From positions 7,192,001 through 7,256,000 of the forward strand of contig CATNEN010000025.1 of NCBI GenBank assembly GCA_950097015.1: a stretch of 64,000 nt of DNA, read 5' to 3'. Below, piece by piece: positions 43,955-64,000 of this stretch (positions are counted from its first letter, which is position 1; each line of letters opens with the position of its first letter). The notes beneath the pieces are model-generated. The model made no database searches, had not been told where the DNA came from, and was given only the letters and a program-made list of their open reading frames with translations. Both the position numbers and the translations under genes were made by a program. Origin of the DNA: Macrostomum hystrix. Its lineage: Eukaryota > Animalia > Platyhelminthes.

Positions 43955-46900
43955 CTAGAGCTGCGGTGTCGCGCAGGGGGATCCGGTGGTGCCGGCATCC
44001 GCAGCGCGGTCCTCCTCCGGAGTGTCCAGGAGGTGGAGGGTTGCTCGCCCGGTGGCCCTCAGGTATCGGACGAGCTGGCAGATGTTCTCAGGCCTGAAAA
44101 CGTCGGGGAGATCCGGATTTGGGCCGAGATAGGTGAGCCGGTCCTGAGTGAAGGCGGGGCAGTCGCAAATAAAATGCTCTGCATCCTCAACATAGGAGAG
44201 GCAGAAGGGGCATTCCTCACTGCGGATTTTGCCTTGCAGGAAGCGGTGCCTGGCGAAACAGCCATGGCCAGAGAGGGCCATGGTGACTGCCCTGACGTCC
44301 TTGCGGTTCAGTCCAAGCAAGGCTTTGCGAAGGGCAGTGGAGGGACAAGGGACAGCAGCGCGAGACTGCCGACAATCGGCGGTATTGATCCATCTGTCCT
44401 TGTGCTTTGAGGTCACCCACTGGTTAATCCGAGTGTTGACGACGGCGGTAGGGGTGGAGACCGCAGGCACGGGGCCAAAAAGCGAACCCGTCGAACCGGC
44501 CTTGGCGAGGCTGTCGGCCAATTCGTTACCAGGGTGGCCAGAGTGCCCTGGAATCCACCTTAGGGACACCTTGTTGTGGGTCCCTAAGCGGTTGAGTTGC
44601 GCGACGCAGTCGAGGACTGTGCGCGAGCAGGTGTGCGTGCGTCCAAGGGCATGGATCGCCGCCTGGCTGTCCGAGTGGAGGAAGATTTCTGCTCCGTGGA
44701 CGTTTTGGTTGATCAGCTCCAGGGCGCAGGAGCTGATGGCGAGAACTTCCTTCTGGAAAACAGTAGAGTTTATGCCGGTGTGCTGGGAGAAGGTCGCCAC
44801 AGTTTTCCCTCCGGACATAATGCAGTAGCCGAAACCAGAGACCGAGTTGATTTGCGATCCGTCGGTGAAGCAGTGAATTTCACGGGGTTGGCCGTGGTCA
44901 CGTACTTCCTGGCGAGGCGGAATGCTGGTTTTGAATTTTTGCGGTGGGCACAGCGTCGACGGGATTCCGTCGGAGAGAATTTTGAGACCTCCTGCTGCGT
45001 CCAGGTCCCGTAGGCTGAGGTCGCCATGGGGCTGGAGGTTCCGCTTGCTGAAGGCAAGTTGCTTCCGGATGGAGATGCCCGCGTCCAGAAGACGACGAGC
45101 CGTCTTCATCGCCTCCCCCTTGATAAAAAGATCTAAAGGGGGAAGGTCCAGGAAGGCATTCATGCCAGCGAAGGGAGTTGAGGGTGCCGCACTCATGATG
45201 GCTCGACAAGCACGGCCCTGCACCTTGTTTAGGGCCTCCAGGACCCCTTTGGTCTCCAGGGCACTATTCCAGATGAAGCCGGCAAAAGAGATGGCCGGTC
45301 TTACAATGGTAGTGTAAATCCACCAGAGACGGCGGGGGGTGAGGCCCCAGGTGGCGCCGAAGGCTCTGCGGATCTGCGCGAGCGTCGCAAGAGCTTTACG
45401 GGTTTTGAATTTGACGTGAGGTGTCCAGCTCAACCTGTGGTCGAGGATGACACCTAAGCATCTGGTTTGCTTCTCCATGGCGATGGGTTTGTCTTAGAGA
45501 AGGAGAGGCTCAATCCTCCAGTTTCGTTTGCTGGTGAACATAATGGCGACGGTCTTGGACTCAGAGAGTTTGAGGCCGCAGCCATTGGCCCAGCGCTCGG
45601 CACGGTGGATGAAAGCTTGCAAAAGGTCTCTAAGGACCGGGGGAGACGGTCCGGCCACGGTGGCGGTGACATCGTCAGCATAGCCGATTTTTTGGACCGG
45701 GTCCGGGTCAGGGCTGCAGAGCAGTTCGTCCATGACAAGGTTCCAAAGGATCGGACTGAGAACGCCACCCTGCGGGCCTCCCTTCTGGACATTCACAGAA
45801 CGGGAGTGTCCAAGCAGGTGCGAGGTGGCAGTTCGGTGAGAGATCATATACATGATCCAGCGGGTGAGGTGCTCGTGCGTAGCCCGGCGTTCCAGGGCTC
45901 GCCTAAAGGCTCCGAAGAGCACATTGTCGAAGGCACCATCAATGTCGAGGAAAAGCGAGAGAGCAAAACCGGTGCCAAGCACGGCGCGCTCAAGCTTGTC
46001 GACAATGGCATGTAGAGCACTTTCGATGGAACGTCCGGATCGAAAGGCGTGCTGGTTGGCGGAGAGCGGGGAGTTCCTCAGCTCAACGTGAAGGAGGCGC
46101 CAAAGAACAAGCCTTTCAAGCAGCTTAAGAAAGAAGGATGTTAAGCTGATGGGGCGGAAGGCTTTGGCGGAGTGGTAGTCTCCCTTCCCAGGTTTGGGGA
46201 TGAAGACGATAGTGGCTTCCTGCCAAGACCTGGGTACGTACCCGAGGGTGATACAGGCCTTGAACAGGTTGCAAAGGAGGCCGAGAAACCTGTCATTTTT
46301 CACCGCTTCATGTAGGAAGGCGGGGTAAATGTTGTCAGGTCCAGGCGACTTAAAAGGCGAGAAGGAGTTTGCAGCGCGAGCTGTCCGTTCTCTAGTGATA
46401 ATAGTTGTCGCAAGGATGTGTCCACCCGGAGTGTGGTCCGGCGGGTCCTGAAGCGGCGCAGTCTGGGGGAAGGCGCTGGCGAGCATGATGTCCAGCGATT
46501 CGCCAGGATTCTCAGCAAGCCGGCCGTCCGGTCTTTTGATCACTGAGAGCTTCGACATTTTGTCAAGAGTGAGCGCTTTTACAACGCGAGAAGTTGGGCG
46601 GGCGCCCTCCAGCTCGGAGCAGTATTGGCGCCACTTTTCGGACTTCGCTTTCCTGGTGTCACGCTTAAAGTCACGAATCGCATTCTGGTAGGCGGTCAGG
46701 TCAGCTGGGTCCTTGCTTTTCCGCGCAATCCGCTGGAGGGATTTGGCCTTTCGCCGGAGGGTTCCAAGCGCTGGGTTCCACCAGGGAGCGGATTTTTTGC
46801 CTTTGTAGGCTTTAAGAGGGCAAGAGGTTTCATGAGCTGTCAAGATGGTCATGCTGAGTAGATCAGCCAGATCGTCCACTTCTTGACAGGTGGCAGGAAC

Positions 46901-47659
46901 AACGGATTCTAACTGGTTGGTCTGGCGCTTCACGGATTCCGCAAAGGCCGTCCAGTCAGTATTCCGGGCGTTCCTTTTCCACAGAATACCAGGCTTGGAG
47001 TAGGAGCTTAGCAACCGGAAACGAATGAAGCAATGGTCAGACAGAGATTCCTCTTCGTCCCACACCTGCCAGTTCCTAATCAGAGGGATCAGGCCCTGAG
47101 AGGCGAGGGTGGCGTCAAGGACCTCCGTCCATCGCCCATTGTCAAAGGTGGGTGTGCCACCCGAGTTGCAGAACTCAATATTGGTGGTGCAGATGTAGTC
47201 AAGGAGATCTTCGCCTCTGCAGTTTGAGGTAACACTGCCCCAGTGGGTGTGGTGGGCATTTATGTCGCCTGCCACCAGCAGCTCAAAGTCGCGGTCTGAG
47301 CAGTAGTCCACGAGGGAAGTGAGACTGGGCGGAACCGCAGGACCGTCACCAGGAATGTATATAGAGGCGATGATGACGGTGCGGTTCGGGAGAATGTGGT
47401 TGGTTTGGATGACACAGAGGTCTTTGTCAGAGAGGTCTGGTCTATACCAAGCTTTGAGATCGGTAGTCGCGAACACAGCAGCCCTGGGGTTTTGGGGCAT
47501 GAAAAAACAGTCAAAACCAGCAGGAATGTTCGGAATCTTACCTTTCTTCGTCCAGGGCTCTTGGAGGAGGATGATGCCCGGTTTTTCGAAGTCCACCACA
47601 CGCGCCAGGTTGGTCGAGGCCGCGATGCAGTGGTGCAGGTTCAGCTGCAGGAAGCTCAC
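43955..47659 (-). pseudogene. LINE ORF2 (AP endonuclease, reverse transcriptase, RNase H, CCHC) with one in-frame TAA at 45494-45496
   Basis: LQLNL, LLQEPW, GDINAHH, LSDH (APE); PQGGVLSP, YADD (RT); [26 protein letters not shown] (RNase H); [14 protein letters not shown]. The two track ORFs share one frame, with only 15 nt between the stop and the next ATG. Confidence 0.9.
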
Positions 47660-47694
47660 CCCAGGAGGGGCGGTCCGTGCGGCTATCTGCTGGC

Positions 47695-49182
47695 CTACGG
47701 CGAGTTGTTCAGGAGCGATTCCTCGTCCTCGCCGGTGTTTTGCCCGAGCTCCATCGGTTCCTCCTGAATCGGATCCAGAGCTGAGGCCGGGGCTGCCGCA
47801 ACAGCGGCGTCCGTGTCCTCAGCCCGGTTTTCCGCTGGGGGTTCCGATGAAACATTGGGCCGGGTGGTGCTGCGGTGGCGTCCACTGTTGGGGTCCGACA
47901 GCTGTCTGGCGCGCTGAGTCAAGCCAGCTCGGATGGTGTTGCGGGCGGGTTTCCGGCCCTTACCACGTCCGCCTGTCGTTGCGGCTCGCGCGGCTTTGCC
48001 CCTGATAGGGTCCGCATCCTCGGAGTGGTCGTGACGATCAGGAGTCTGTGTTCCAGGGCGCAGGGGCCCGGCAGAGCTCTGGTTCGTCCGTTTCTGCTTT
48101 TCCGGGGGCGGCGGGCGAGTGGCGTCGGACTCGAAGCTGAAAATCTGCATTCGAGTGAGGCCTGCACTGATGTAGGACATGTCTGGGCAGCGGAGCATCC
48201 AGCTGTCCGACAATCCTAGGATGGCCGTGAAACCGTCTCCACCAGGTCTGGTGATGGTTTCATGAACTACGACACCGTTTGCTGGCAGATCCGGGTGGAT
48301 TGCCAACAGCAGGCGGCGCAGTTCTCCGGCGTTGGTGATGGCGCTGCGAGCTGGAATCCAAACACGATGACGCTGTGTCTGGGGGCGCTCGTCCTCCCTG
48401 TAGATAAACAGGTTGCCCATTTCCGTGCCCCAGTCGAAGGATTTCAGCATCTCGAGGAGTTGCTGTCCGGACTGGTTGTCGGCAGGCTGGACAATGAGGG
48501 CTTGGTCCTGGATGTCGGTCTTCAGGACGTGCAGTACAGTGCCGCTCAGTGCCAGTTTGACCAGATGGGAGTCCAATCTGCGCCAGATCTGGTCGAGTTG
48601 CGCTGTTGTGAGGGGCGTCTCCTGGCCTCGGATAACCAAGGCCGGCTGCCTCTTTGCCATAGCAGCGTAAGTGCGTTTTGGCCTTGTGGTTTGGCCGGCG
48701 CCTCCCGCAACGGGCCCCCCAGCAGTCGTCGGAGTTTCCGTATGACTGTGAGAGGTTCCGCCGCGAGAGGAACCGGATGCCCCAGAGGCCTGGGCGGCAC
48801 TTTTCCGCGCTTCCGGGTTTCCCGGATGACGCGAGGAGTCCGCCTCCTTGTTGGGTGCCGGTTCCTCCGCGATGTTCGCAGAGTTGCCGGCCCCCTCCTC
48901 GGAGGCGGTGGTTGGCGCGGACTTCGCAGCCAACCGTCCTTCCTGTTTGCGCCGCCGGAATTCCTGGAAGCGGGCGAAGCTGCGGGCCTGCGTGGCAGGG
49001 GAGCGTTTGCTCTTTGATCCAGCCGCTCTGGTGTTTTCCTGAGTGGCGGAGGAGCAGGATGGGTTTTGGGCGCCGGTGGAACCGGTGTCGCCCTGGCGCT
49101 GGTCCTGAGGATCTGCGTCGCCGGCCGGGGTCGGCGTTTCAGCAGGGTCCTGGGACGTGCTGGAGCTGTAGTGGGACTCCAT
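47695..49182 (-). CDS. LINE ORF1, 495 aa (DUF4780-like central domain)
   Basis: Directly upstream of ORF2. RHRVWIP...LLLAIHPDLP...GFTAILGL resembles LOA/R1 ORF1 DUF4780 from memory; no CCHC knuckles. Confidence 0.75.
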   Translation of the reverse strand: MESHYSSSTSQDPAETPTPAGDADPQDQRQGDTGSTGAQNPSCSSATQENTRAAGSKSKRSPATQARSFARFQEFRRRKQEGRLAAKSAPTTASEEGAGNSANIAEEPAPNKEADSSRHPGNPEARKSAAQASGASGSSRGGTSHSHTETPTTAGGPVAGGAGQTTRPKRTYAAMAKRQPALVIRGQETPLTTAQLDQIWRRLDSHLVKLALSGTVLHVLKTDIQDQALIVQPADNQSGQQLLEMLKSFDWGTEMGNLFIYREDERPQTQRHRVWIPARSAITNAGELRRLLLAIHPDLPANGVVVHETITRPGGDGFTAILGLSDSWMLRCPDMSYISAGLTRMQIFSFESDATRPPPPEKQKRTNQSSAGPLRPGTQTPDRHDHSEDADPIRGKAARAATTGGRGKGRKPARNTIRAGLTQRARQLSDPNSGRHRSTTRPNVSSEPPAENRAEDTDAAVAAAPASALDPIQEEPMELGQNTGEDEESLLNNSP

Positions 49183-49315
49183 AGGTCGCTGGAAAAAGAG
49201 AAAGAAGAGAATAAAAATAAAAACCGCTAATGGCCGGATAGACTCCCCGGACCTTTCAGCCCCTCAGCGCGGTGAGACCTTAGGCATAAGAGGACACCTA
49301 AAGCAGTGCCAGGCC

Positions 49316-52956: not shown

Positions 52957-55900
52957 GTGTCAGGTAGCCGGGCACGGAACCTGCTGGCAGCGGCAGGAGC
53001 CAATGACGGGCATGCGGAGCAGGCGGGTCTCGCCAGACTGGCACTTCACCGGCGTCGGTATCGGCGAGTAGGTGACGCGGTCCGGCTGGCAGCCGGTACA
53101 CCTGGCTCCTGGAAGTTCCAGCAGGTAGACCTGGCTGGCGGCGTTGTCGTCGACTCGCCTCGGCGCAATCAACGGAGAGGCCTGCGGGCAGTGGCCTCGG
53201 CAGTGGGGCACGCGGATTGGCTTGACCAGCTGACAGGCGGAGTCCAATCGGCTGATGGTGACCTCCTCGCGACTGCAGGCTGTAGGAGCGGCTCGGTAGC
53301 AGCAGCGCTTCGAGTCCTTGGCCTTCTGCTCGATGGGGAGTTACGAAAGAGAAGGTAGAAATGCCAGGTTTTTGTTTTAATTGTTTTATTGCAGCAGAAA
53401 TTATAGTGTCGTGCCGGAGTTCTCACCGGAGCAGTCTGGGCCATCCGTTCGTCATTCAGGCTGCAGGCAGGCATCTGGTCGACGCTGAGCGGAATTGTGC
53501 TAGTGCGGCCCTTGTCACAGGTCACCACCTGGCAGGCCGCCAAATCGACGGCGTAGCCGCCGTGCTGCAAGTGGCAGAGAAAAAAGTTGAAGTCTGTTTC
53601 ATTGACTAAATAAGTGCCGGAATGTTTCGACCTGGGAGTTCCTAATTCTTAATTACTCAACAGATTTTCGACAAACATCTGTCAGCATCATTTCAAAATT
53701 TTGTGTCTACTGGCCTTCAACTAGGCGACGCATCTGGATCTTCTAAAACGCTTCTGGAAACCTAAGAATAGCAACTCGAGGACACCAACTGTCTCACTGG
53801 ACTGAGATTCGAACTCCGGATCTCTCGTTAAGGAGTCCAAGGCTCTACGCCCTAGGCAACAGCCTCCACCATATGTACTACAGTACTACTAACACTCACA
53901 TTGAGAGTAGTATTGCCGCTGACGCATCTGTAGCACTCGGCCAGTGGCACGCAGGCGTCGCCTCGCTTCACCAGGCCGCGGGCGCAGACGCAGGCCTGCT
54001 CCGGACAGCGCTGCCGAGGCTGACCGAGGCCACCAGCAGAATAGCACTGCTCGTCGCATTCGCCGAATTCGTTGTAGCGCTGGCCGCTGGGACACAGAGA
54101 GTCTGTTTCGGGTGGGACAATTTAAGGAAACAAGTTGTTGAGCTTCGATCGACAGAAAAAATGTGGCATTCGAAATACCCCCGTGGTTTTTCTACTGTTA
54201 AGCAAGCTGTCAATCTGCTTCAAGAGTTGAATTAATTTACCGCAGCTCAGCGTCGAGTTGCACAGCTCGTACTTCACAGACGGTCCCTGGCAGGCCTTGG
54301 ACTCCAGGTAGTCGGAGTTGCGAGGCGAGCGCACAAACTTCTGCAGGCCCGGCTTGAGACGGCAGCCGGCGGTGCACTGACCCTCGGGTCGCCAGTTGGA
54401 CCAGTGGCACTCGTCTGAGCAGCTGGACAGCCGGCTGCATTTGAACACTCCATCCTGGCAGGTACTGATTTAATTGGTTATTAGAGATAGCGCGGATTTT
54501 AGTTTTTTTAGGTCGACTTTGTTTGATCAGATTAGTTTGAATAGCGAATTACGTGTTCAAGTTCTCACCAGTTCTTGCATCCCATGATGAGGCGCTCGCC
54601 CGGAGCAAACTCTTCCTTCGTTCCTGGACTTCTCCGGCCCATCAGCTCTTCATTCCAGCGGCAGCGGCAGACCTGCCTGGTCACGCAGCCGCCGTCCTGT
54701 TCATATTGACCGGCGGGGCAGGCGCACACAGTTGCCACGGTGTTGACGGCGGTGGCGGCGGTGACAATAGTGACGTTAGCAGTTGGTGCGGCGACGCACT
54801 TGTCCTCGCTGGCTAGATCAGCGCAGCGAACAACGCACTGACTCTGCCGCAGTGGCCGCTTAGTCATCGGGGCCCGACAGATGCTACTGGTCTGGCAGCC
54901 AGGTGTTAGGCAGGAGCGCAGCTGCCTGGCCTCTTCGCAGGCGCGGCCTCCGTTGGCCGGCTGTGCGATGACGCCACGCGATCGGACCTGTAGGCCGGCA
55001 CAGCCGGCGGCCGAAGATCGGACGCAGGCGCCCCAGGCGGACCAGGCGGCCTGGGAGCAGTCCACCGGGCAGGGCTTCGAGCAGGGCACATCCTCGCGTC
55101 GCAGCTCCGGGCATGGCGTGCCACCGTCCGATGGAAGTTGGAGAATGCGCCGGTAGAGGGTGCGGAAACCACTGGCCTGGGCAAAGCGGACCATGCAGTT
55201 AGCGTAGCAGGTGCCTTCGATCCATTCAGGCGACACAATACAGTCTCTCTTCGTTACTGTGATGCGTTTGTGGGGATGCCGTTTGTTGTTGACATAATAA
55301 TGTAAATACCAATAAAAACCAACTGCTACCACTATTTATCCTCTTGGGTAAAAAACTCACCTGGTGTTCTAGGCAGGCAGTCCTTCCATTCGATCGACTC
55401 CTCTTTGTCGAAAAATTCGCCACATTTTCTTAAATCGTCCGGGCAGACTCGGATGCATCGACGGCGCCGCTCTTGGCGTCGGTTGGCAGAGTCGGCGTTG
55501 ACACAAGCGCTCCAGGTAGACCAGGCTGACCAGACTGGTGCAGGGACCGGCTCGCCAGTCTTGGCCTTACTCACGCACTCAGTGCGGTTGGCATGGCAGA
55601 AGCTGAATAAATGGTCATGGCGGCAGCGGTGTGATTTGAAAGTATAAAACGAATGAATAAACCTTTAAGACTCTAAGGTGATACGATTATAAGACTAGGA
55701 GATCTAGTCTATTGTCTATTGAAAGACAGTAAAAGGAAGCTCTTATTATCAGATGCATTATCAGATTTTTCGCAAGGTCACACTGAAACGGACACAAAAG
55801 CTTACCACAAGGAGCATTGGTCCTGAGCCGGCATTGCCTGGCCTTCTGTGTACAAATCGCCGTTGTGATCCTTGCAGGTGTAGCCACATAGGCGAGCGTT

Positions 55901-58900
55901 GCAGTGGCGAGTCTCAATTAGGTCAGACTTGCCGCAACCAACGGCTTGTTTGGCTCCGCGATGGCCCTCCTGCAGCAGCTGTCGGGTCCGGTGGCTGACG
56001 CCCTCGCCGCAGCTTACAGAGCAGGCGGACCAGGCCGACCACTCGGTATAGAGGCGCTGGCAAGTGAGGTCAGGCTGGCAGGTAGGCTGGCCATTGAGGC
56101 AGACTGGCTTGTAGCTGAAGTGAAATTTGGTGGTGATTCGCTAGGCCTGGATTTCGGTAATGTACTCTTAGTTTGGGAGCTGATCACCTTTTGATGCGAG
56201 CAATACGAAATTTAGTCATACAAAAAAATCGATGGATTTCAACTCTGAACTCACCAAGCCGAGCACTTGATTGCATTTGTTGAACACGCGCACTTACTAG
56301 TCGCAACGCACTGACCTCTGGGATCCATTACTTGACCCTTGGGGCATAGGCAACCGCTAAGGCACGCGTCGGTCTGTGAGCAGAGAGTCTTCGTGTTAGC
56401 TCCGGCTGAGCATGCCACATCGCAGCCAGTGGCATTGTGGCAAGCGCTGTGAATTTGACCGCTAGAACAAGCGGCTCGCGCAGGTCGCAGCTGGCAAGGC
56501 TGCAGCTCTCGGTCGGCACCGGGGCAGCTGCCAATCGGCTGGCGGCGCCGCTCTCGCACGCCAATATCGTTTCCAGCGCCGCCAGTGCAGTTGCTCCATG
56601 GCGCCCAACTTGACCAGGCGCAGCCAGGACAGGGCTCCAGGCCGCATACCTGCGTGTCCGTGAAACCTGCTGATTGGCAAGCGGCACCGTCGCCAACCGC
56701 CGGCTTGTAAACCGTTCGGCGTCGTGTCTGCAACCCTCCACCGCAGGTAACGCTGCAAGCAGCCCACGGCTGCCAGGCACTCCATTGACAGTCGCTCGGA
56801 CAGCGCTGAAGCTGGCAAGCGAAGCCACCGTCTTTGCAGGTGCAGTGAAGACAGCCAACCTTCAGCACGGTTCCGCTCTCAAGTCTATCGCCATCGTTCA
56901 CCACTTCCAGAGCATTGGAGAGGCCAGGCTTGCCGTCTCGCTCCACCCACATCTCGGCGTGATAATAGTCGTCTGTTAGAATCCACTGCAGCTTGGCTCT
57001 ACTGTAAACACAGTAGCAATCCACACCTGAGCAAGCTCGAGACTCGTTTGCATGTCCTGATACGGCGCAGGCGGGTCCACTGCACTGACGGAAGCGGTAC
57101 TGCTTGCCTTCGCCGCAGTGCGCGCTGCAGTTTGACCAGGTTGTCCACGTAGACCATGAAGCCAGCGAGCTGTCCTGACCTCCAACACAGGTTGTCTTGC
57201 CGGAAGTGCATGTGCAGTTGCTGCCACCGACCAGCACCCAGCCGCTAGTTGTTTGTGAAACGGCAAGCGTGGTAGCTGAGACAGAAATAGGCCTTGAAGG
57301 CGTTGTCTGGAGGGCGCCAGGAGCGCCTGATGAGGCACGCGGCCCGGCTGGTGGGCCTCCTGGGAACTGTGGCGCGACTGGCTTGATCGTCGATGGCCTC
57401 GTGGATGTTTGCGAATGCTGGCTTGACCCGCTTGTGTGACGACTTGTGATGCTTGGCATGGATCGAGTAGTTGGTGTTGAGCGCTTAGTAAACTGAGAAG
57501 GCTTCTGAGTTGTTAGCAGAGCAGGCAGGTTTGGCAGCGTAGGAATGAACAAGTTAACGCGATCATCAGCAGCTGTTCCGCGATGTCTAGCTGCCTGACT
57601 GGACATCATATCTGGCTTCCTTGTGGTTGTAACAGCGGACACAGCGGCCGTATGAGGGCCGGCTGGAACTGGCTGAAGGCCAGGCCGGTTGACTGGGGTC
57701 TGTTCTTTAGGCTGCTTTGTTGAAGATTTAACTGGGTCAGCAGGTCCTGAAGGGCGAGTCACGGATGGATTCAATGGTTTCACCTCGGGCTTTGCGATCG
57801 GATTGAAAGAGGTGCCTCCAGGTAGACGGAAAACTGGTTGAGCAGGGTTGAACTGACCGAAGCTACTTCCGCCGGGCGGGCGGAACGCTGGTGGAGGCCT
57901 AAACTGGCCAGGCAGTTGCAATGCCGGACTGCGCACTGCTGGAACTGGCAATCGGAACCGGGGCGGAGGGCGGAACGCAAAATGTTGGTAAAATCCGCGA
58001 TTGCCGCCATGCATCGGAGGAGGCGGTACTGGTAGTCGCATGATGCTGTGCGGTGGTGTAACGCGGAATGCAGCTAGTGTGTTTGGCTTGAATGGGGCCT
58101 GTCCAGGAGCGACGAAGTTCTTCACAGTGAAGCTACCAAACGATCCTTTCGTCACGCCAGCAAAAAACGCCGCTGGAGTGGCGACGTTGGATGGCGCGAC
58201 GGGACTTGCCTTACCAGAAGCAGTCGTGGTTACGGAGGCTGCCGCGGTCGTGGTCGATACGGCAGCTGAAGTAGAAGTCGATGCTGCTCTTGAAGTAGAT
58301 CCTGGCGGTAGCACGGGTATCAAAAGATTCAGGCCATCAGGGGCAGCAGTTCCACGAATTCTGGCCGGTGTCGTCGCCGATGAGGTCGAAGTTGTTGAGT
58401 GGGTCTTGATAGTCGTAGTCACCACACCCACAGGTAGCTTCGGTATAAGCATGCCGACGCGATCCGGTGCTGCTGTACCTCTGATGCGTGGAGGCAGCGG
58501 GCTGGACGAAGGTGGAGTACTGAGGCTGACGACTCCGCTAGCCCCTGACGACTTTTGTAGACCCAAGCTGAGAGCCGAAGTAGTAATGACTCCGCCACTC
58601 AGTACTGTTGGCAGAGCTGGAATCAGCAGATTAAGATCCGGGATGAGCATCGACATGCGATCCGGAGCGGCGGTGCCGCGAATGCGAGCAGCCTGGCTGG
58701 ACATGAAAAAAATCGAGCTGCTGGCTTTAGCGCCTGGCGTTGTTGTTCCATTCAAACTAATTGTTATGGTCGTCGGCGATAGTCCTGGGCAGCGACACTG
58801 CGATTGTGGCACACACCTGCCGTCCTGCAGGTAATAACCAGGCTTGCAGAAACACCCGGGCACACAGGCAGACGACATGACACATGAAGAAAGTTCGGAC

Positions 58901-61900
58901 AGGTGGCCACAAGTGAGCGGACAGTGATTAGAGCAGTTCGTCCAGGCTGCGTTAGGATCCTTGCACACTAAAACATATTCGGAGTTAGATCATTTAGTTG
59001 GCAGGCAAAACGGTTTCGTGCCAGCGATTTAAAATCGCAGATTTTTTTCTAACAGAACTTACAGCACTTTTCGGCATTCGGACACCAACGAGACTCCGGT
59101 TTTACGATCATTTTGCAGAAACTAGACAAGACGACTCCGCGCGGCTCTCGCTTTCGCTCGGAAAGCAAAGTGTTGCACTGGCCCAAGCATGGACTCCAAG
59201 GACCCCATTCACCAAGGTTGCACTCGTCTTCTGAAAGAAAAATATTGCAGTTGCTTTCGATGCCTGATCGTATGCACCAGTCAAGAAAACGAAGGCACTC
59301 ACTTTGACATCTTCGAATAAAGCACGGCTGACGTTCCACCTGGTTGAAGCACTTCTCCAGTGTTGTCAAGTTTCCTGTTTCAAACACATCCCGGAAGCTA
59401 GGACGGCAAATTTTCATGCGACTTCTAAAACCACCGTCACAATCGGAGGAACAGTTCGACCAAGATGACCACGAAGAACAATCATAAAGTGGCTCCCATG
59501 ACCTTTTGCGGCACATACTAAAAATTATATGTTAAAACGAAGCATATTTGCACTACACATAACATATACGACCCAATTACAAAAAAGCGATACGACAATA
59601 ATATTATTAAAGAAAACTTACTGGTAGTTACAACTCCGGTCTCCAAAAGTTAAAATCGATCCCTCCGAAAAAGTCGATCCATTAAACGAACAATTCCTAC
59701 AAGGCTCCTGGCATGAAACAACGTCAACATTCAGCATCGATGAAAAAACGACAGAAACTGAAACAAAAACAAACTTCGGCAGCTTCGGCAGCTCTGGCAG
59801 TGCCACGTTCTCTAGATCGCTCGGTCGCAGTGCACTTCCTGGTCGAGGCGTCACCTTGTTCACCTGCACGTACTTCTCTGGCTTGTCCTCGTCGCCGACA
59901 AACACGGTCACCTCGCTCACCGAGTCGGGAGTGCTGCTCGAGAGCACCACCTTCATCAGGCTGGCAGTATTTGGCAGTTTAGTTACATCGAAGGTCAGCT
60001 GAGTAACACTACCAGGCTGAACAGGTAGTCCGCGACCTCCAGGCAGCACCTCGTTTCTCTCACCGACTGGGACCTCCTTCTTCTCTGGCAGTTTCTCGAC
60101 TCTGGTCAGGGCGCTGCGTGGCAGCTCGCCGCTCTCAAACAGTTTCACACTTTTGCGCAGGCACTGGGCCGGTCGTCTGGTTGTGGTGGTCGCAGGCACA
60201 GGCGTTGTGGTCGTCTTTCCTCCCGCCGCCGGCAGAGATGGCATCGGGAAGGTGAGCTTCTCAGCAGCTGGTGTTCCGCGCGATCTGCCAGACGTGCTGG
60301 CTGCAGCGCGTGTTGTAGTCGTCAAAACGGTGGTCTTCGGCTCGTGACAGGCCTTTAGCTCAGCCTTGATTTTGGTCGCCTTGCCGGGCTGCGTCTTCAC
60401 TGTGACGCGAACAAACTTCGGCAGCTTCGGCAGCTCTGGCAGTGCCACGTTCTCTAGATCGCTCGGTCGCAGTGCACTTCCTGGTCGAGGCGTCACCTTG
60501 TTCACCTGCACGTACTTCTCTGGCTTGTCCTCGTCGCCGACAAACACGGTCACCTCGCTCACCGAGTCGGGAGTGCTGCTCGAGAGCACCACCTTCATCA
60601 GGCTGGCAGTATTTGGCAGTTTAGTTACATCGAAGGTCAGCTGAGTAACACTACCAGGCTGAACAGGTAGTCCGCGACCTCCAGGCAGCACCTCGTTTCT
60701 CTCACCGACTGGGACCTCCTTCTTCTCTGGCAGTTTCTCGACTCTGGTCAGGGCGCTGCGTGGCAGCTCGCCGCTCTCAAACAGTTTCACACTCTTGCGC
60801 AGGCACTGGGCCGGTCGTCTGGTTGTGGTGGTCGCAGGCACAGGCGTTGTGGTCGTCTTTCCTCCCGCCGCCGGCAGAGATGGCATCGGGAAGGTGAGCT
60901 TCTCAGCAGCTGGTGTTCCGCGCGATCTGCCAGACGTGCTGGCTGCAGCGCGTGTTGTAGTCGTCAAAACGGTGGTCTTCGGCTCGTGACAGGCCTTTAG
61001 CTCAGCCTTGATTTTGGTCGCCTTGCCGGGCTGCGTCTTCACTGTGACGCGAACAAACTTCGGCAGCTTCGGCAGCTCTGGCAGTGCCACGTTCTCTAGA
61101 TCGCTCGGTCGCAGTGCACTTCCTGGTCGAGGCGTCACCTTGTTCACCTGCACGTACTTCTCTGGCTTGTCCTCGTCGCCGACAAACACGGTCACCTCGC
61201 TCACCGAGTCGGGAGTGCTGCTCGAGAGCACCACCTTCATCAGGCTGGCAGTATTTGGCAGTTTAGTTACATCGAAGGTCAGCTGAGTAACACTACCAGG
61301 CTGAACAGGTAGTCCGCGACCTCCAGGCAGCACCTCGTTTCTCTCACCGACTGGGACCTCCTTCTTCTCTGGCAGTTTCTCGACTCTGGTCAGGGCGCTG
61401 CGTGGCAGCTCGCCGCTCTCAAACAGTTTCACACTTTTGCGCAGGCACTGGGCCGGTCGTCTGGTTGTGGTGGTCGCAGGCACAGGCGTTGTGGTCGTCT
61501 TTCCTCCCGCCGCCGGCAGAGATGGCATCGGGAAGGTGAGCTTCTCAGCAGCTGGTGTTCCGCGCGATCTGCCAGACGTGCTGGCTGCAGCGCGTGTTGT
61601 AGTCGTCAAAACGGTGGTCTTCGGCTCGTGACAGGCCTTTAGCTCAGCCTTGATTTTGGTCGCCTTGCCGGGCTGCGTCTTCACTGTGACGCGAACAAAC
61701 TTCGGCAGCTTCGGCAGCTCTGGCAGTGCCACGTTCTCTAGATCGCTCGGTCGCAGTGCACTTCCTGGTCGAGGCGTCACCTTGTTCACCTGCACGTACT
61801 TCTCTGGCTTGTCCTCGTCGCCGACAAACACGGTCACCTCGCTCACCGAGTCGGGAGTGCTGCTCGAGAGCACCACCTTCATCAGGCTGGCAGTATTTGG

Positions 61901-64000
61901 CAGTTTAGTTACATCGAAGGTCAGCTGAGTAACACTACCAGGCTGAACAGGTAGTCCGCGACCTCCAGGCAGCACCTCGTTTCTCTCACCGACTGGGACC
62001 TCCTTCTTCTCTGGCAGTTTCTCGACTCTGGTCAGGGCGCTGCGTGGCAGCTCGCCGCTCTCAAACAGTTTCACACTCTTGCGCAGGCACTGGGCCGGTC
62101 GTCTGGTTGTGGTGGTCGCAGGCACAGGCGTTGTGGTCGTCTTTCCTCCCGCCGCCGGCAGAGATGGCATCGGGAAGGTGAGCTTCTCAGCAGCTGGTGT
62201 TCCGCGCGATCTGCCAGACGTGCTGGCTGCAGCGCGTGTTGTAGTCGTCAAAACGGTGGTCTTCGGCTCGTGACAGGCCTTTAGCTCAGCCTTGATTTTG
62301 GTCGCCTTGCCGGGCTGCGTCTTCACTGTGACGCGAACAAACTTCGGCAGCTTCGGCAGCTCTGGCAGTGCCACGTTCTCTAGATCGCTCGGTCGCAGTG
62401 CACTTCCTGGTCGAGGCGTCACCTTGTTCACCTGCACGTACTTCTCTGGCTTGTCCTCGTCGCCGACAAACACGGTCACCTCGCTCACCGAGTCGGGAGT
62501 GCTGCTCGAGAGCACCACCTTCATCAGGCTGGCAGTATTTGGCAGTTTAGTTACATCGAAGGTCAGCTGAGTAACACTACCAGGCTGAACAGGTAGTCCG
62601 CGACCTCCAGGCAGCACCTCGTTTCTCTCACCGACTGGGACCTCCTTCTTCTCTGGCAGTTTCTCGACTCTGGTCAGGGCGCTGCGTGGCAGCTCGCCGC
62701 TCTCAAACAGTTTCACACTCTTGCGCAGGCACTGGGCCGGTCGTCTGGTTGTGGTGGTCGCAGGCACAGGCGTTGTGGTCGTCTTTCCTCCCGCCGCCGG
62801 CAGAGATGGCATCGGGAAGGTGAGCTTCTCAGCAGCTGGTGTTCCGCGCGATCTGCCAGACGTGCTGGCTGCAGCGCGTGTTGTAGTCGTCAAAACGGTG
62901 GTCTTCGGCTCGTGACAGGCCTTTAGCTCAGCCTTGATTTTGGTCGCCTTGCCGGGCTGCGTCTTCACTGTGACGCGAACAAACTTCGGCAGCTTCGGCA
63001 GCTCTGGCAGTGCCACGTTCTCTAGATCGCTCGGTCGCAGTGCACTTCCTGGTCGAGGCGTCACCTTGTTCACCTGCACGTACTTCTCTGGCTTGTCCTC
63101 GTCGCCGACAAACACGGTCACCTCGCTCACCGAGTCGGGAGTGCTGCTCGAGAGCACCACCTTCATCAGGCTGGCAGTATTTGGCAGTTTAGTTACATCG
63201 AAGGTCAGCTGAGTAACACTACCAGGCTGAACAGGTAGTCCGCGACCTCCAGGCAGCACCTCGTTTCTCTCACCGACTGGGACCTCCTTCTTCTCTGGCA
63301 GTTTCTCGACTCTGGTCAGGGCGCTGCGTGGCAGCTCGCCGCTCTCAAACAGTTTCACACTCTTGCGCAGGCACTGGGCCGGTCGTCTGGTTGTGGTGGT
63401 CGCAGGCACAGGCGTTGTGGTCGTCTTTCCTCCCGCCGCCGGCAGAGATGGCATCGGGAAGGTGAGCTTCTCAGCAGCTGGTGTTCCGCGCGATCTGCCA
63501 GACGTGCTGGCTGCAGCGCGTGTTGTAGTCGTCAAAACGGTGGTCTTCGGCTCGTGACAGGCCTTTAGCTCAGCCTTGATTTTGGTCGCCTTGCCGGGCT
63601 GCGTCTTCACTGTGACGCGAACAAACTTCGGCAGCTTCGGCAGCTCTGGCAGTGCCACGTTCTCTAGATCGCTCGGTCGCAGTGCACTTCCTGGTCGAGG
63701 CGTCACCTTGTTCACCTGCACGTACTTCTCTGGCTTGTCCTCGTCGCCGACAAACACGGTCACCTCGCTCACCGAGTCGGGAGTGCTGCTCGAGAGCACC
63801 ACCTTCATCAGGCTGGCAGTATTTGGCAGTTTAGTTACATCGAAGGTCAGCTGAGTAACACTACCAGGCTGAACAGGTAGTCCGCGACCTCCAGGCAGCA
63901 CCTCGTTTCTCTCACCGACTGGGACCTCCTTCTTCTCTGGCAGTTTCTCGACTCTGGTCAGGGCGCTGCGTGGCAGCTCGCCGCTCTCAAACAGTTTCAC
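52957..64000 (-). CDS. Giant secreted mucin/SCO-spondin-like glycoprotein, C-terminal part; exons >64000-59622, 59517-59063, 58967-56255, 56114-55806, 55602-55361, 55244-54569, 54464-54241, about 54102-53899, about 53570-53430, about 53340-52957
   Basis: Many TSP1 motifs (WSxWSxCSxxCG..R.R.R), TIL domains (CPLTC..C..C..GCFC), VWC-like segments, a Pro/Thr/Ser-rich region and a C-terminal cystine knot (C..CRGHC..CTGC..CRC) ending in TGA at 52957-52959. The larger joins are GT-AG and in phase. Confidence 0.85.
59760..64000 (-). repeat. 642-bp (214-aa) near-perfect coding tandem repeat, at least 6.6 copies
   Basis: Track ORFs recur at a 642-bp period (60153, 60795, 61437, 62079, 62721, 63363); the only difference noticed between full copies is synonymous CACTTTTGC vs CACTCTTGC. 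Confidence 0.95.

Follow-up and report, generated by a model that had tools for sequence, protein, structure and literature searches.

The glue of the duo-gland adhesive organs in flatworms of the genus Macrostomum contains a large surface-contacting protein, ap2, which is tied to the animal via the polycationic protein ap1 (PMC6410801; PMC8621496). The described representative from M. lignano, Mlig-ap2 (MH586845), has an N-terminal part with VWD, TIL, C8 and LDLa domains, followed by the two repeat arrays RP-1 and RP-2 and a C-terminal part with TIL and TSP1 domains (Wunderer et al., 2019; PMC6410801). The protein carries Gal-beta1,3-GalNAc reactive with peanut agglutinin (PNA) (PMC6410801), and the published work credits surface binding to ap2 as a whole and not to its repeat modules (PMC6410801; PMC8621496). 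In M. hystrix, a probe derived from an ap2 transcript (AP2-3') gave an in situ hybridisation signal only in the tail plate, and RNA interference (RNAi) caused complete loss of attachment (PMC8621496). The authors of this 2021 comparison could not assemble the repeat core of the M. hystrix protein and called for good genomes (PMC8621496). Here we analysed a stretch of 64,000 nucleotides of the M. hystrix genome (contig 25, positions 7192001-7256000), referred to as the window. As a whole it is best explained as holding the 3' part of the RP-2 region of the M. hystrix ap2 gene, Mhtx-ap2, and very probably this gene encodes a giant glue protein of beta-sandwich beads joined by linkers.

Identity of the gene and layout of its repeat core

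A minus-strand open frame (59618-64000) runs past the edge of the window and holds tandem units of 642 bp, corresponding to 214 amino acids (aa), with a DNA identity of 99.5-100% between units. The six complete units inside the window differ from each other at 0-1 positions in pairwise comparison, and the seventh departs after its own base 381 (window position 59767). We added 60 kb and continued the window numbering upstream of the gene on contig 25; positions above 64000 are given in these extended coordinates. Local BLAST on the fetched loci showed that the RP-2 array comprises 32.6 units in total (59768-80694, the latter being contig 25 position 7272694), 6.6 of which lie inside the window. 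Such an array is not explicable by chance. Tandem Repeats Finder is blind to it because the period exceeds 500. In each unit, Cys2 and Cys154 delimit a segment of 156 aa; the 58-aa linker that follows is rich in Thr (29%), Ala (16%) and Pro (14%) and has an isoelectric point (pI) of 12. Thus, the preliminary description of this DNA, made from its letters, was right in reporting a homogenised array of 214-aa modules composed of a Cys-bounded globular segment and a Thr/Ala/Pro linker, and the peptide strings quoted in it were found.

Directly upstream of RP-2 lies the RP-1 array, in which 18.9 units of 729 bp (243 aa) span 80825-94590 and are likewise 99.5-100% identical in DNA. The linkers of both arrays share the motif GTPAAEKLTFPMPS as well as the motif GTPAAE..TFPMPS. 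A single open frame of 7537 codons (96747 down to 74137) reads through an LDLa domain, four diverged Cys-bounded modules and RP-1 into RP-2; RP-1, RP-2 and the four diverged modules can be aligned with each other at 10-26% identity. Further upstream, searching the exons singly against Pfam and using natural M. lignano proteins for junction checks, we found minus-strand open reading frames (ORFs) that start with a signal-peptide-like sequence (MKRRLLPLASAVLLLAFLA, near 108040) and continue with TIL, VWD, TIL, VWD, C8 and two LDLa domains. The gene therewith extends on the minus strand from about 108040 down to at least 55806 and encodes about 15,000 residues in the order signal peptide, TIL, VWD, TIL, VWD, C8, two LDLa, four diverged modules, RP-1 (18.9 units), RP-2 (32.6 units) and TSP1/TIL, with the repeats making up about three-quarters of the protein.

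The published M. hystrix material maps into this gene. Supplementary Table S5 of the 2021 comparison lists the AP2-3' transcript, the probe primers and a Sanger read (PMC8621496). The two gene-specific primers match the window once each, at 59349-59370 (minus) and 58547-58568 (plus), giving a probe span of 58547-59370, and the Sanger cDNA reproduces the exon junctions 59303|59230 and 59063|58967. We compared the first 400 nucleotides (nt) of the published transcript as well as the primers, and in translation the printed transcript start gives the last part of an RP-1 unit and the unique genomic junction between RP-1 and RP-2. The genomic span from primer to primer less two introns amounts to 657 bp versus the 671 bp expected in the table, leaving 14 bp unaccounted for. 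With probe primers, Sanger cDNA and RP-1/RP-2 junction identical to the genome, the deposited Mhtx-ap2b (OK245469; PMC8621496) is the gene described here.

Comparison with M. lignano leads to the same gene. The M. lignano protein P0004 (PAA86063.1) has the same N-terminal residues as published Mlig-ap2; 13 upstream exon pieces, followed by the first RP-1 unit, align with it colinearly at 47-85% identity. Two M. lignano fragments (P0016 and P0003) contain units of 221 aa with 75% identity to RP-2, and a third (P0005) has 255-aa units matching RP-1, where the identity to Mlig-ap2 reaches 85%. The peptides used to raise the anti-Mlig-ap2 antibody (PMC6410801) are present in P0001, which matches RP-2, and in P0005. 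Several of these Mlig-ap2 fragments (P0003, P0005, P0006, P0016 and P0017) bear misleading automatic UniRef names, among them 'Microtubule-associated protein futsch', 'Protein abnormal spindle', 'C2 domain-containing protein' and 'AHD domain-containing protein'.

The characters of ap2 are therefore found together at this locus: an N-terminus with two VWD as well as TIL, C8 and LDLa domains, successive RP-1 and RP-2 arrays, a C-terminal part with TIL and TSP1, and colinearity with Mlig-ap2. Because the probe primers, the cDNA junctions, the colinear N-terminal exons and the unit matches to Mlig-ap2 all converge, we identify the gene as Mhtx-ap2, and therefore it is not an undescribed glue. The two orthologs share their layout, both are expressed in the adhesive glands, and RNAi renders the animals non-adhesive. 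They differ in unit length and number, with 243 aa x 18.9 and 214 aa x 32.6 in M. hystrix versus 255 aa x 21 and 221 aa x 25 in Mlig-ap2, and their units have been homogenised separately in each species.

The preliminary description had proposed an undescribed adhesive or cocoon component and had cited Mlig-ap2 as an analogy only. That the gene encodes a mucus, cocoon or adhesive protein merely resembling ap2 could be argued from the fact that its repeat unit has no Pfam domain and that the M. hystrix ap2 repeat region had never been assembled in the literature. Yet this very gene, whose RNAi abolished attachment (PMC8621496), is where the ap2 probe and cDNA published for M. hystrix map, colinearity with Mlig-ap2 holds from the signal peptide on, and only one other locus in the genome, a paralog on contig 39 that is clearly more distant, has such modules. 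We regard a protein other than ap2 as extremely improbable. The proposal of novelty consequently falls, and the supposed analogue is the ortholog; the picture of a beads-on-a-string secreted glue protein holds. Since ap2 is already known as the surface-binding glue of Macrostomum, the locus is ordinary as the discovery of a new adhesive. What it supplies is the repeat core of M. hystrix ap2, with unit sequences, their order, approximate counts and junctions.

Homogeneity of the arrays

Substitutions across the whole RP-2 array amount to 0-3 per unit. No differences exist among the central units; what substitutions there are concentrate in the ten 5'-most units, where neighbours share variants. 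In M. lignano, all units score alike against the M. hystrix unit, so they appear to be near-identical among themselves. We take homogenisation to be ongoing because near-identity within the arrays stands against a protein identity to M. lignano of 75% (RP-2) and 85% (RP-1), and because the edge variants are common to neighbours. The RP arrays thus show the signature of concerted evolution, by unequal crossing-over or gene conversion, as had been suggested for this array from its near-identical units.

A different origin of this homogeneity has to be weighed. The M. hystrix assembly was built from PacBio and Illumina reads and passed several rounds of polishing (Wiberg et al., 2023; PMC10468722), and the two arrays together represent about 35 kb of near-identical sequence, so that homogeneity and copy number might largely be products of assembly and polishing, with true units being more divergent or otherwise numbered. 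Two RP-2 units indeed measure 643 bp (69137-69779 and 73632-74274; contig 25 7261137-7261779 and 7265632-7266274), because in each a short run of C is one base longer, which disrupts the reading frame. Insertions of this kind are typical residual errors of long reads, and the two extra C are probably just that; they also limit the earlier view of one uninterrupted exon, which is correct inside the window and fails upstream at these two units. An artefact does not, however, fit the order of the variants, which cluster towards the array edges and recur in adjacent units, as expected from unequal exchange and not from blanket consensus polishing. Moreover, M. lignano independently has 21 and 25 near-identical units, and the published M. 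hystrix transcript holds the same unit and junction sequences. We therefore consider it improbable that the homogeneity of the arrays is largely an artefact, and favour concerted evolution.

Predicted fold of the repeat modules and a proposed mode of action

The published papers describe the ap2 repeats as motifs without a known domain. The preliminary description had likened the end of the unit to the F5/8 type C (discoidin) family. At the level of sequence we found no such relation: RP-2, RP-1 and all of 13 modules were without a Pfam match at E values up to 10, F5/8 type C (PF00754) included, and a profile of the 13 modules retrieved nothing relevant from the PDB sequences. Structure prediction gave a different picture. 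The AlphaFold2 model of the RP-2 module reached a pLDDT of 86.4 and a pTM of 0.83 (13-sequence alignment), and that of the RP-1 module, with the same strand order, a pLDDT of 94.0 and a pTM of 0.88 (15 sequences). Foldseek against the PDB returned the HERC2 DOC domain, CBM32, BIRC6, APC10, the DDR2 discoidin domain and neuropilin b1, with E values from 6e-5 to 2e-3 and TM scores of about 0.5. VIA-align, run against 48,161 chains, ranked HERC2 DOC (Z 11.1) and CBM32 (Z 10.3) high for RP-2 and gave top Z scores of 11.4, 11.1 and 10.8 for RP-1, all well above the background stated for this tool. Almost all of the top 50 chains for both models have the galactose-binding-domain-like fold, and the chain at rank 50 still scored Z 8.3-8.9. 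Neuropilin b1, DDR1/2, the C domains of factor V/VIII, muskelin, CASPR2 and discoidin I scored Z 8.3-10.2 against the module models. In the ESM Atlas the neighbours were discoidin/CBM32 clusters; this likeness is weak (score 0.90, few shared features, below the recognition threshold) and serves as a lead only.

Animal discoidin domains have a disulfide that links their two ends. Among 15 modules compared, at least 90% retain the terminal cysteines, and the ends of the module models align with the chain ends of DDR2, DDR1, neuropilin b1 and factor V C2. Taken together, the models predict a discoidin/CBM32/DOC fold for the RP-1/RP-2 unit, as a beta-sandwich of about 150 aa that is basic (pI about 9.4-10) and bounded by Cys. 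The earlier discoidin idea is thereby supported by the predicted fold and not by family membership, as the sequence profiles contain no F5/8 type C match.

How the module compares with the individual relatives of this fold is instructive. With the discoidin family it shares the predicted jelly-roll and the cysteines at both ends, whereas sequence similarity is not detectable and ap2 strings more than 50 units together by long mucin-like linkers; Nectin, a temporary adhesive of sea urchins, has six tandem FA58C domains. CBM32 and DOC (HERC2, APC10) are the best structural matches (Z 10.3-11.4, 121-133 residues aligned, 8-15% identity). CBM32 modules occur in bacteria as appendages of glycosidases and DOC domains inside cells as parts of ubiquitin ligases, and unlike the Mhtx-ap2 modules both lack the terminal cysteines and the extracellular repeat context. 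Gel-forming mucins, SCO-spondin and hemocytin-type proteins resemble Mhtx-ap2 in the VWD-C8-TIL head, in O-glycosylated stretches rich in Thr and Pro, in the TSP1 repeats and probably also in a cystine knot at the C-terminus. In contrast to the plain proline/threonine/serine (PTS) mucin domain of gel-forming mucins, the centre of Mhtx-ap2 alternates folded modules with short PTS linkers. New with respect to the literature are the discoidin/CBM32-like beta-sandwich, predicted with high confidence, and the mucin-like linker of each ap2 repeat. The prediction offers a concrete and testable structural model and connects ap2 with the discoidin domains present in adhesives of echinoderms.

We propose that the roughly 56 beta-sandwich beads would make ap2 a long, multivalent thread, adsorbing to the substrate and anchored to the animal by ap1. 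The linkers would be the carriers of the published PNA-reactive core-1 O-glycans and act as stiff mucin-like stalks, and the VWD/C8/TIL head might, together with a possible cystine-knot tail, allow mucin-like disulfide multimers.

The modules might instead be working lectins that bind glycans of the Gal/GalNAc type, either in the conditioning film of the substrate or on the linkers of neighbouring ap2 molecules, which would yield a self-crosslinking network. Many of the closest structural matches of the models are galactose/GalNAc-binding CBM32 modules and discoidin domains, ap2 itself carries Gal-beta1,3-GalNAc (PMC6410801), and discoidin domains recur in the temporary adhesives of echinoderms, as in Nectin. 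Equally good matches, however, are not lectins (HERC2/APC10 DOC, IFT25, PITH, BIRC6), the modules have no sequence similarity to lectins and binding residues cannot be transferred, and the attachment of the animals to chemically diverse self-assembled monolayers suits non-specific adsorption (PMC6410801). We judge lectin activity of the modules to be rather unlikely, and it is unlikely that the roughly 56 modules are active lectins on the Gal-beta1,3-GalNAc of neighbouring ap2 linkers or on glycans of the surface film. Were the lectin reading true, the glue would set as a self-complementary lectin-glycan network, and temporary adhesion would rest on one fold-level solution common to ap2 of flatworms, Nectin of sea urchins and the footprint proteins of sea stars.

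Several points weigh against our reading of the locus as a gene for a giant glue protein of beta-sandwich beads and linkers. The fold assignment comes from AlphaFold models built on shallow alignments of 13-15 sequences, with TM scores of only about 0.5, and has no tie at the sequence level to any known domain family. The roles of bead and linker are our proposal, set beside publications that credit surface binding to the whole of ap2. If both 1-bp insertions in RP-2 are real, this allele would not yield a full-length protein, and polishing of the PacBio assembly could have homogenised the units, affecting both copy number and identity. Finally, the 3' end of the gene is ambiguous, with a TAA that overlaps a splice donor at about 55802-55806.

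Module relatives, gene ends and neighbouring sequence

Public protein data contain very few members of the module family. A profile of six M. hystrix module types retrieved only 12 of 1.84 billion representative proteins, namely four M. lignano ap2 fragments, five single-module proteins (154-191 aa) from ENA/Logan and three partial matches, at least one of them a bacterial Ig-like protein. The single-module ENA/Logan proteins are remote relatives. Those designated P0010-P0014, P0025 and P0026 are 25-29% identical to the ap2 and contig-39 modules and each end in ...IK(V/I/A)C..TTT; three of the ENA/Logan single-module proteins are carried by one contig of 12.6 kb.

A profile search of the whole M. 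hystrix genome located the module only in Mhtx-ap2 and on contig 39 (position 2072905). The contig-39 gene (2062001-2102000) has exons of the VWD/TIL/C8/LDLa type, 11 modules, eight of which are near-identical units of 218 aa, a Thr-rich frame of 5380 codons and a Cys-rich tail; three VWD-like exon pieces are putative and come from reading the ORF list. Over the matching N-terminal parts it is 25-38% identical to Mlig-ap2. At its start, the AP2-5' transcript published for M. hystrix, which we take as the fragment Mhtx-ap2a (OK245468; PMC8621496), matches contig 39 without mismatch and not contig 25 (two sequence strings within the first 400 nt). A 30-nt string of AP2-5' had no match in the genome and probably spans an exon junction. 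For ap2a of M. hystrix and M. spirale, an extra initial VWD-TIL-C8 has been described (PMC8621496), and the contig-39 gene and the 5' sequence of M. spirale start alike. The M. hystrix ap2a fragment thus appears to be a product of the paralog, and the M. spirale fragment is probably one too; a paralog origin of the ap2a fragments would explain the extra VWD-TIL-C8 in both species. This correction bears on the design of probes and on comparisons of domain architecture.

At the 3' end of the array, the last RP-2 module has its final beta-strands swapped for a different, still coding sequence that ends in a Cys and is followed by a short Cys-rich piece. We considered whether the divergence might reflect a short in-frame intron and rejected this, as M. 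lignano P0001 aligns through the region as coding sequence. The preliminary description had recognised the divergence of the last unit and read it as a VWC-like segment; the former is confirmed, and VWC was absent by Pfam at E values up to 10 from window positions 59621-60148 and 59621-59770 and from M. lignano P0001, the spliced equivalent. The features of the gene inside the window are compiled in Table 1.

Table 1. Features of Mhtx-ap2 inside the window (window coordinates).
Feature	Position	Strand	Basis
Part of the RP-2 array inside the window	59768..64000	-	unit identity 99.5-100%; 75% aa identity to the 221-aa M. lignano RP-2 units
Representative globular module, 156 aa, Cys2-Cys154, predicted galactose-binding-domain-like beta-sandwich	62909..63376	-	AlphaFold2, Foldseek, VIA-align
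Representative 58-aa Thr/Ala/Pro-rich basic linker, likely O-glycosylation stalk	62735..62908	-	composition, pI 12, RP-1 motif
Diverged end of last module and short Cys-rich spacer	59622..59767	-	M. lignano P0001 aligns across; exon end at 59622 before GTAAGT donor
Intron GTAAGT...TAG	59518..59621	-	junction reproduces M. lignano P0001 ...HVCRKRSWEPLYDC
Exon with TSP1, probe forward primer site 59349-59370	59303..59517	-	Pfam TSP_1, primer match, Sanger cDNA junction 59303|59230
Exon with second TSP1	59063..59230	-	Pfam; cDNA junctions 59303|59230 and 59063|58967
Large exon of about 905 aa with TIL, mucin-like low-complexity region, three TSP1 and second TIL	56254..58967	-	Pfam, translation; reverse primer site 58547-58568
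Exon with TSP1; frame closes at TAA overlapping a consensus GTAAG donor (about 55802-55806)	55806..56113	-	Pfam, sequence
ORFs with TSP1, TIL and cystine knot, without own start codon or signal peptide (probable 3' exons)	52963..55664	-	Pfam, ORF list, splice-site reading

Judged from their sequence, the ORFs at 52963-55664 are probably 3' exons of Mhtx-ap2, and the protein probably has a cystine knot at its C-terminal end. Hence ap2 may have unreported 3' exons that end in a CTCK domain, and a transcript retaining the intron would seem to stop early. In the large exon, the region between the first TIL and the TSP1 cluster (57541-58693, minus strand) is mucin-like, with a recurring ARIRGTAAPDR..(L/M)LIP.LP motif and proline-rich FRPP/FRLP repeats. 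Just downstream of ap2, GC-rich frames of 512, 774 and 522 codons lie at 43958-49263 on the minus strand, and their peptide text suggests that they may be retroelement-like.

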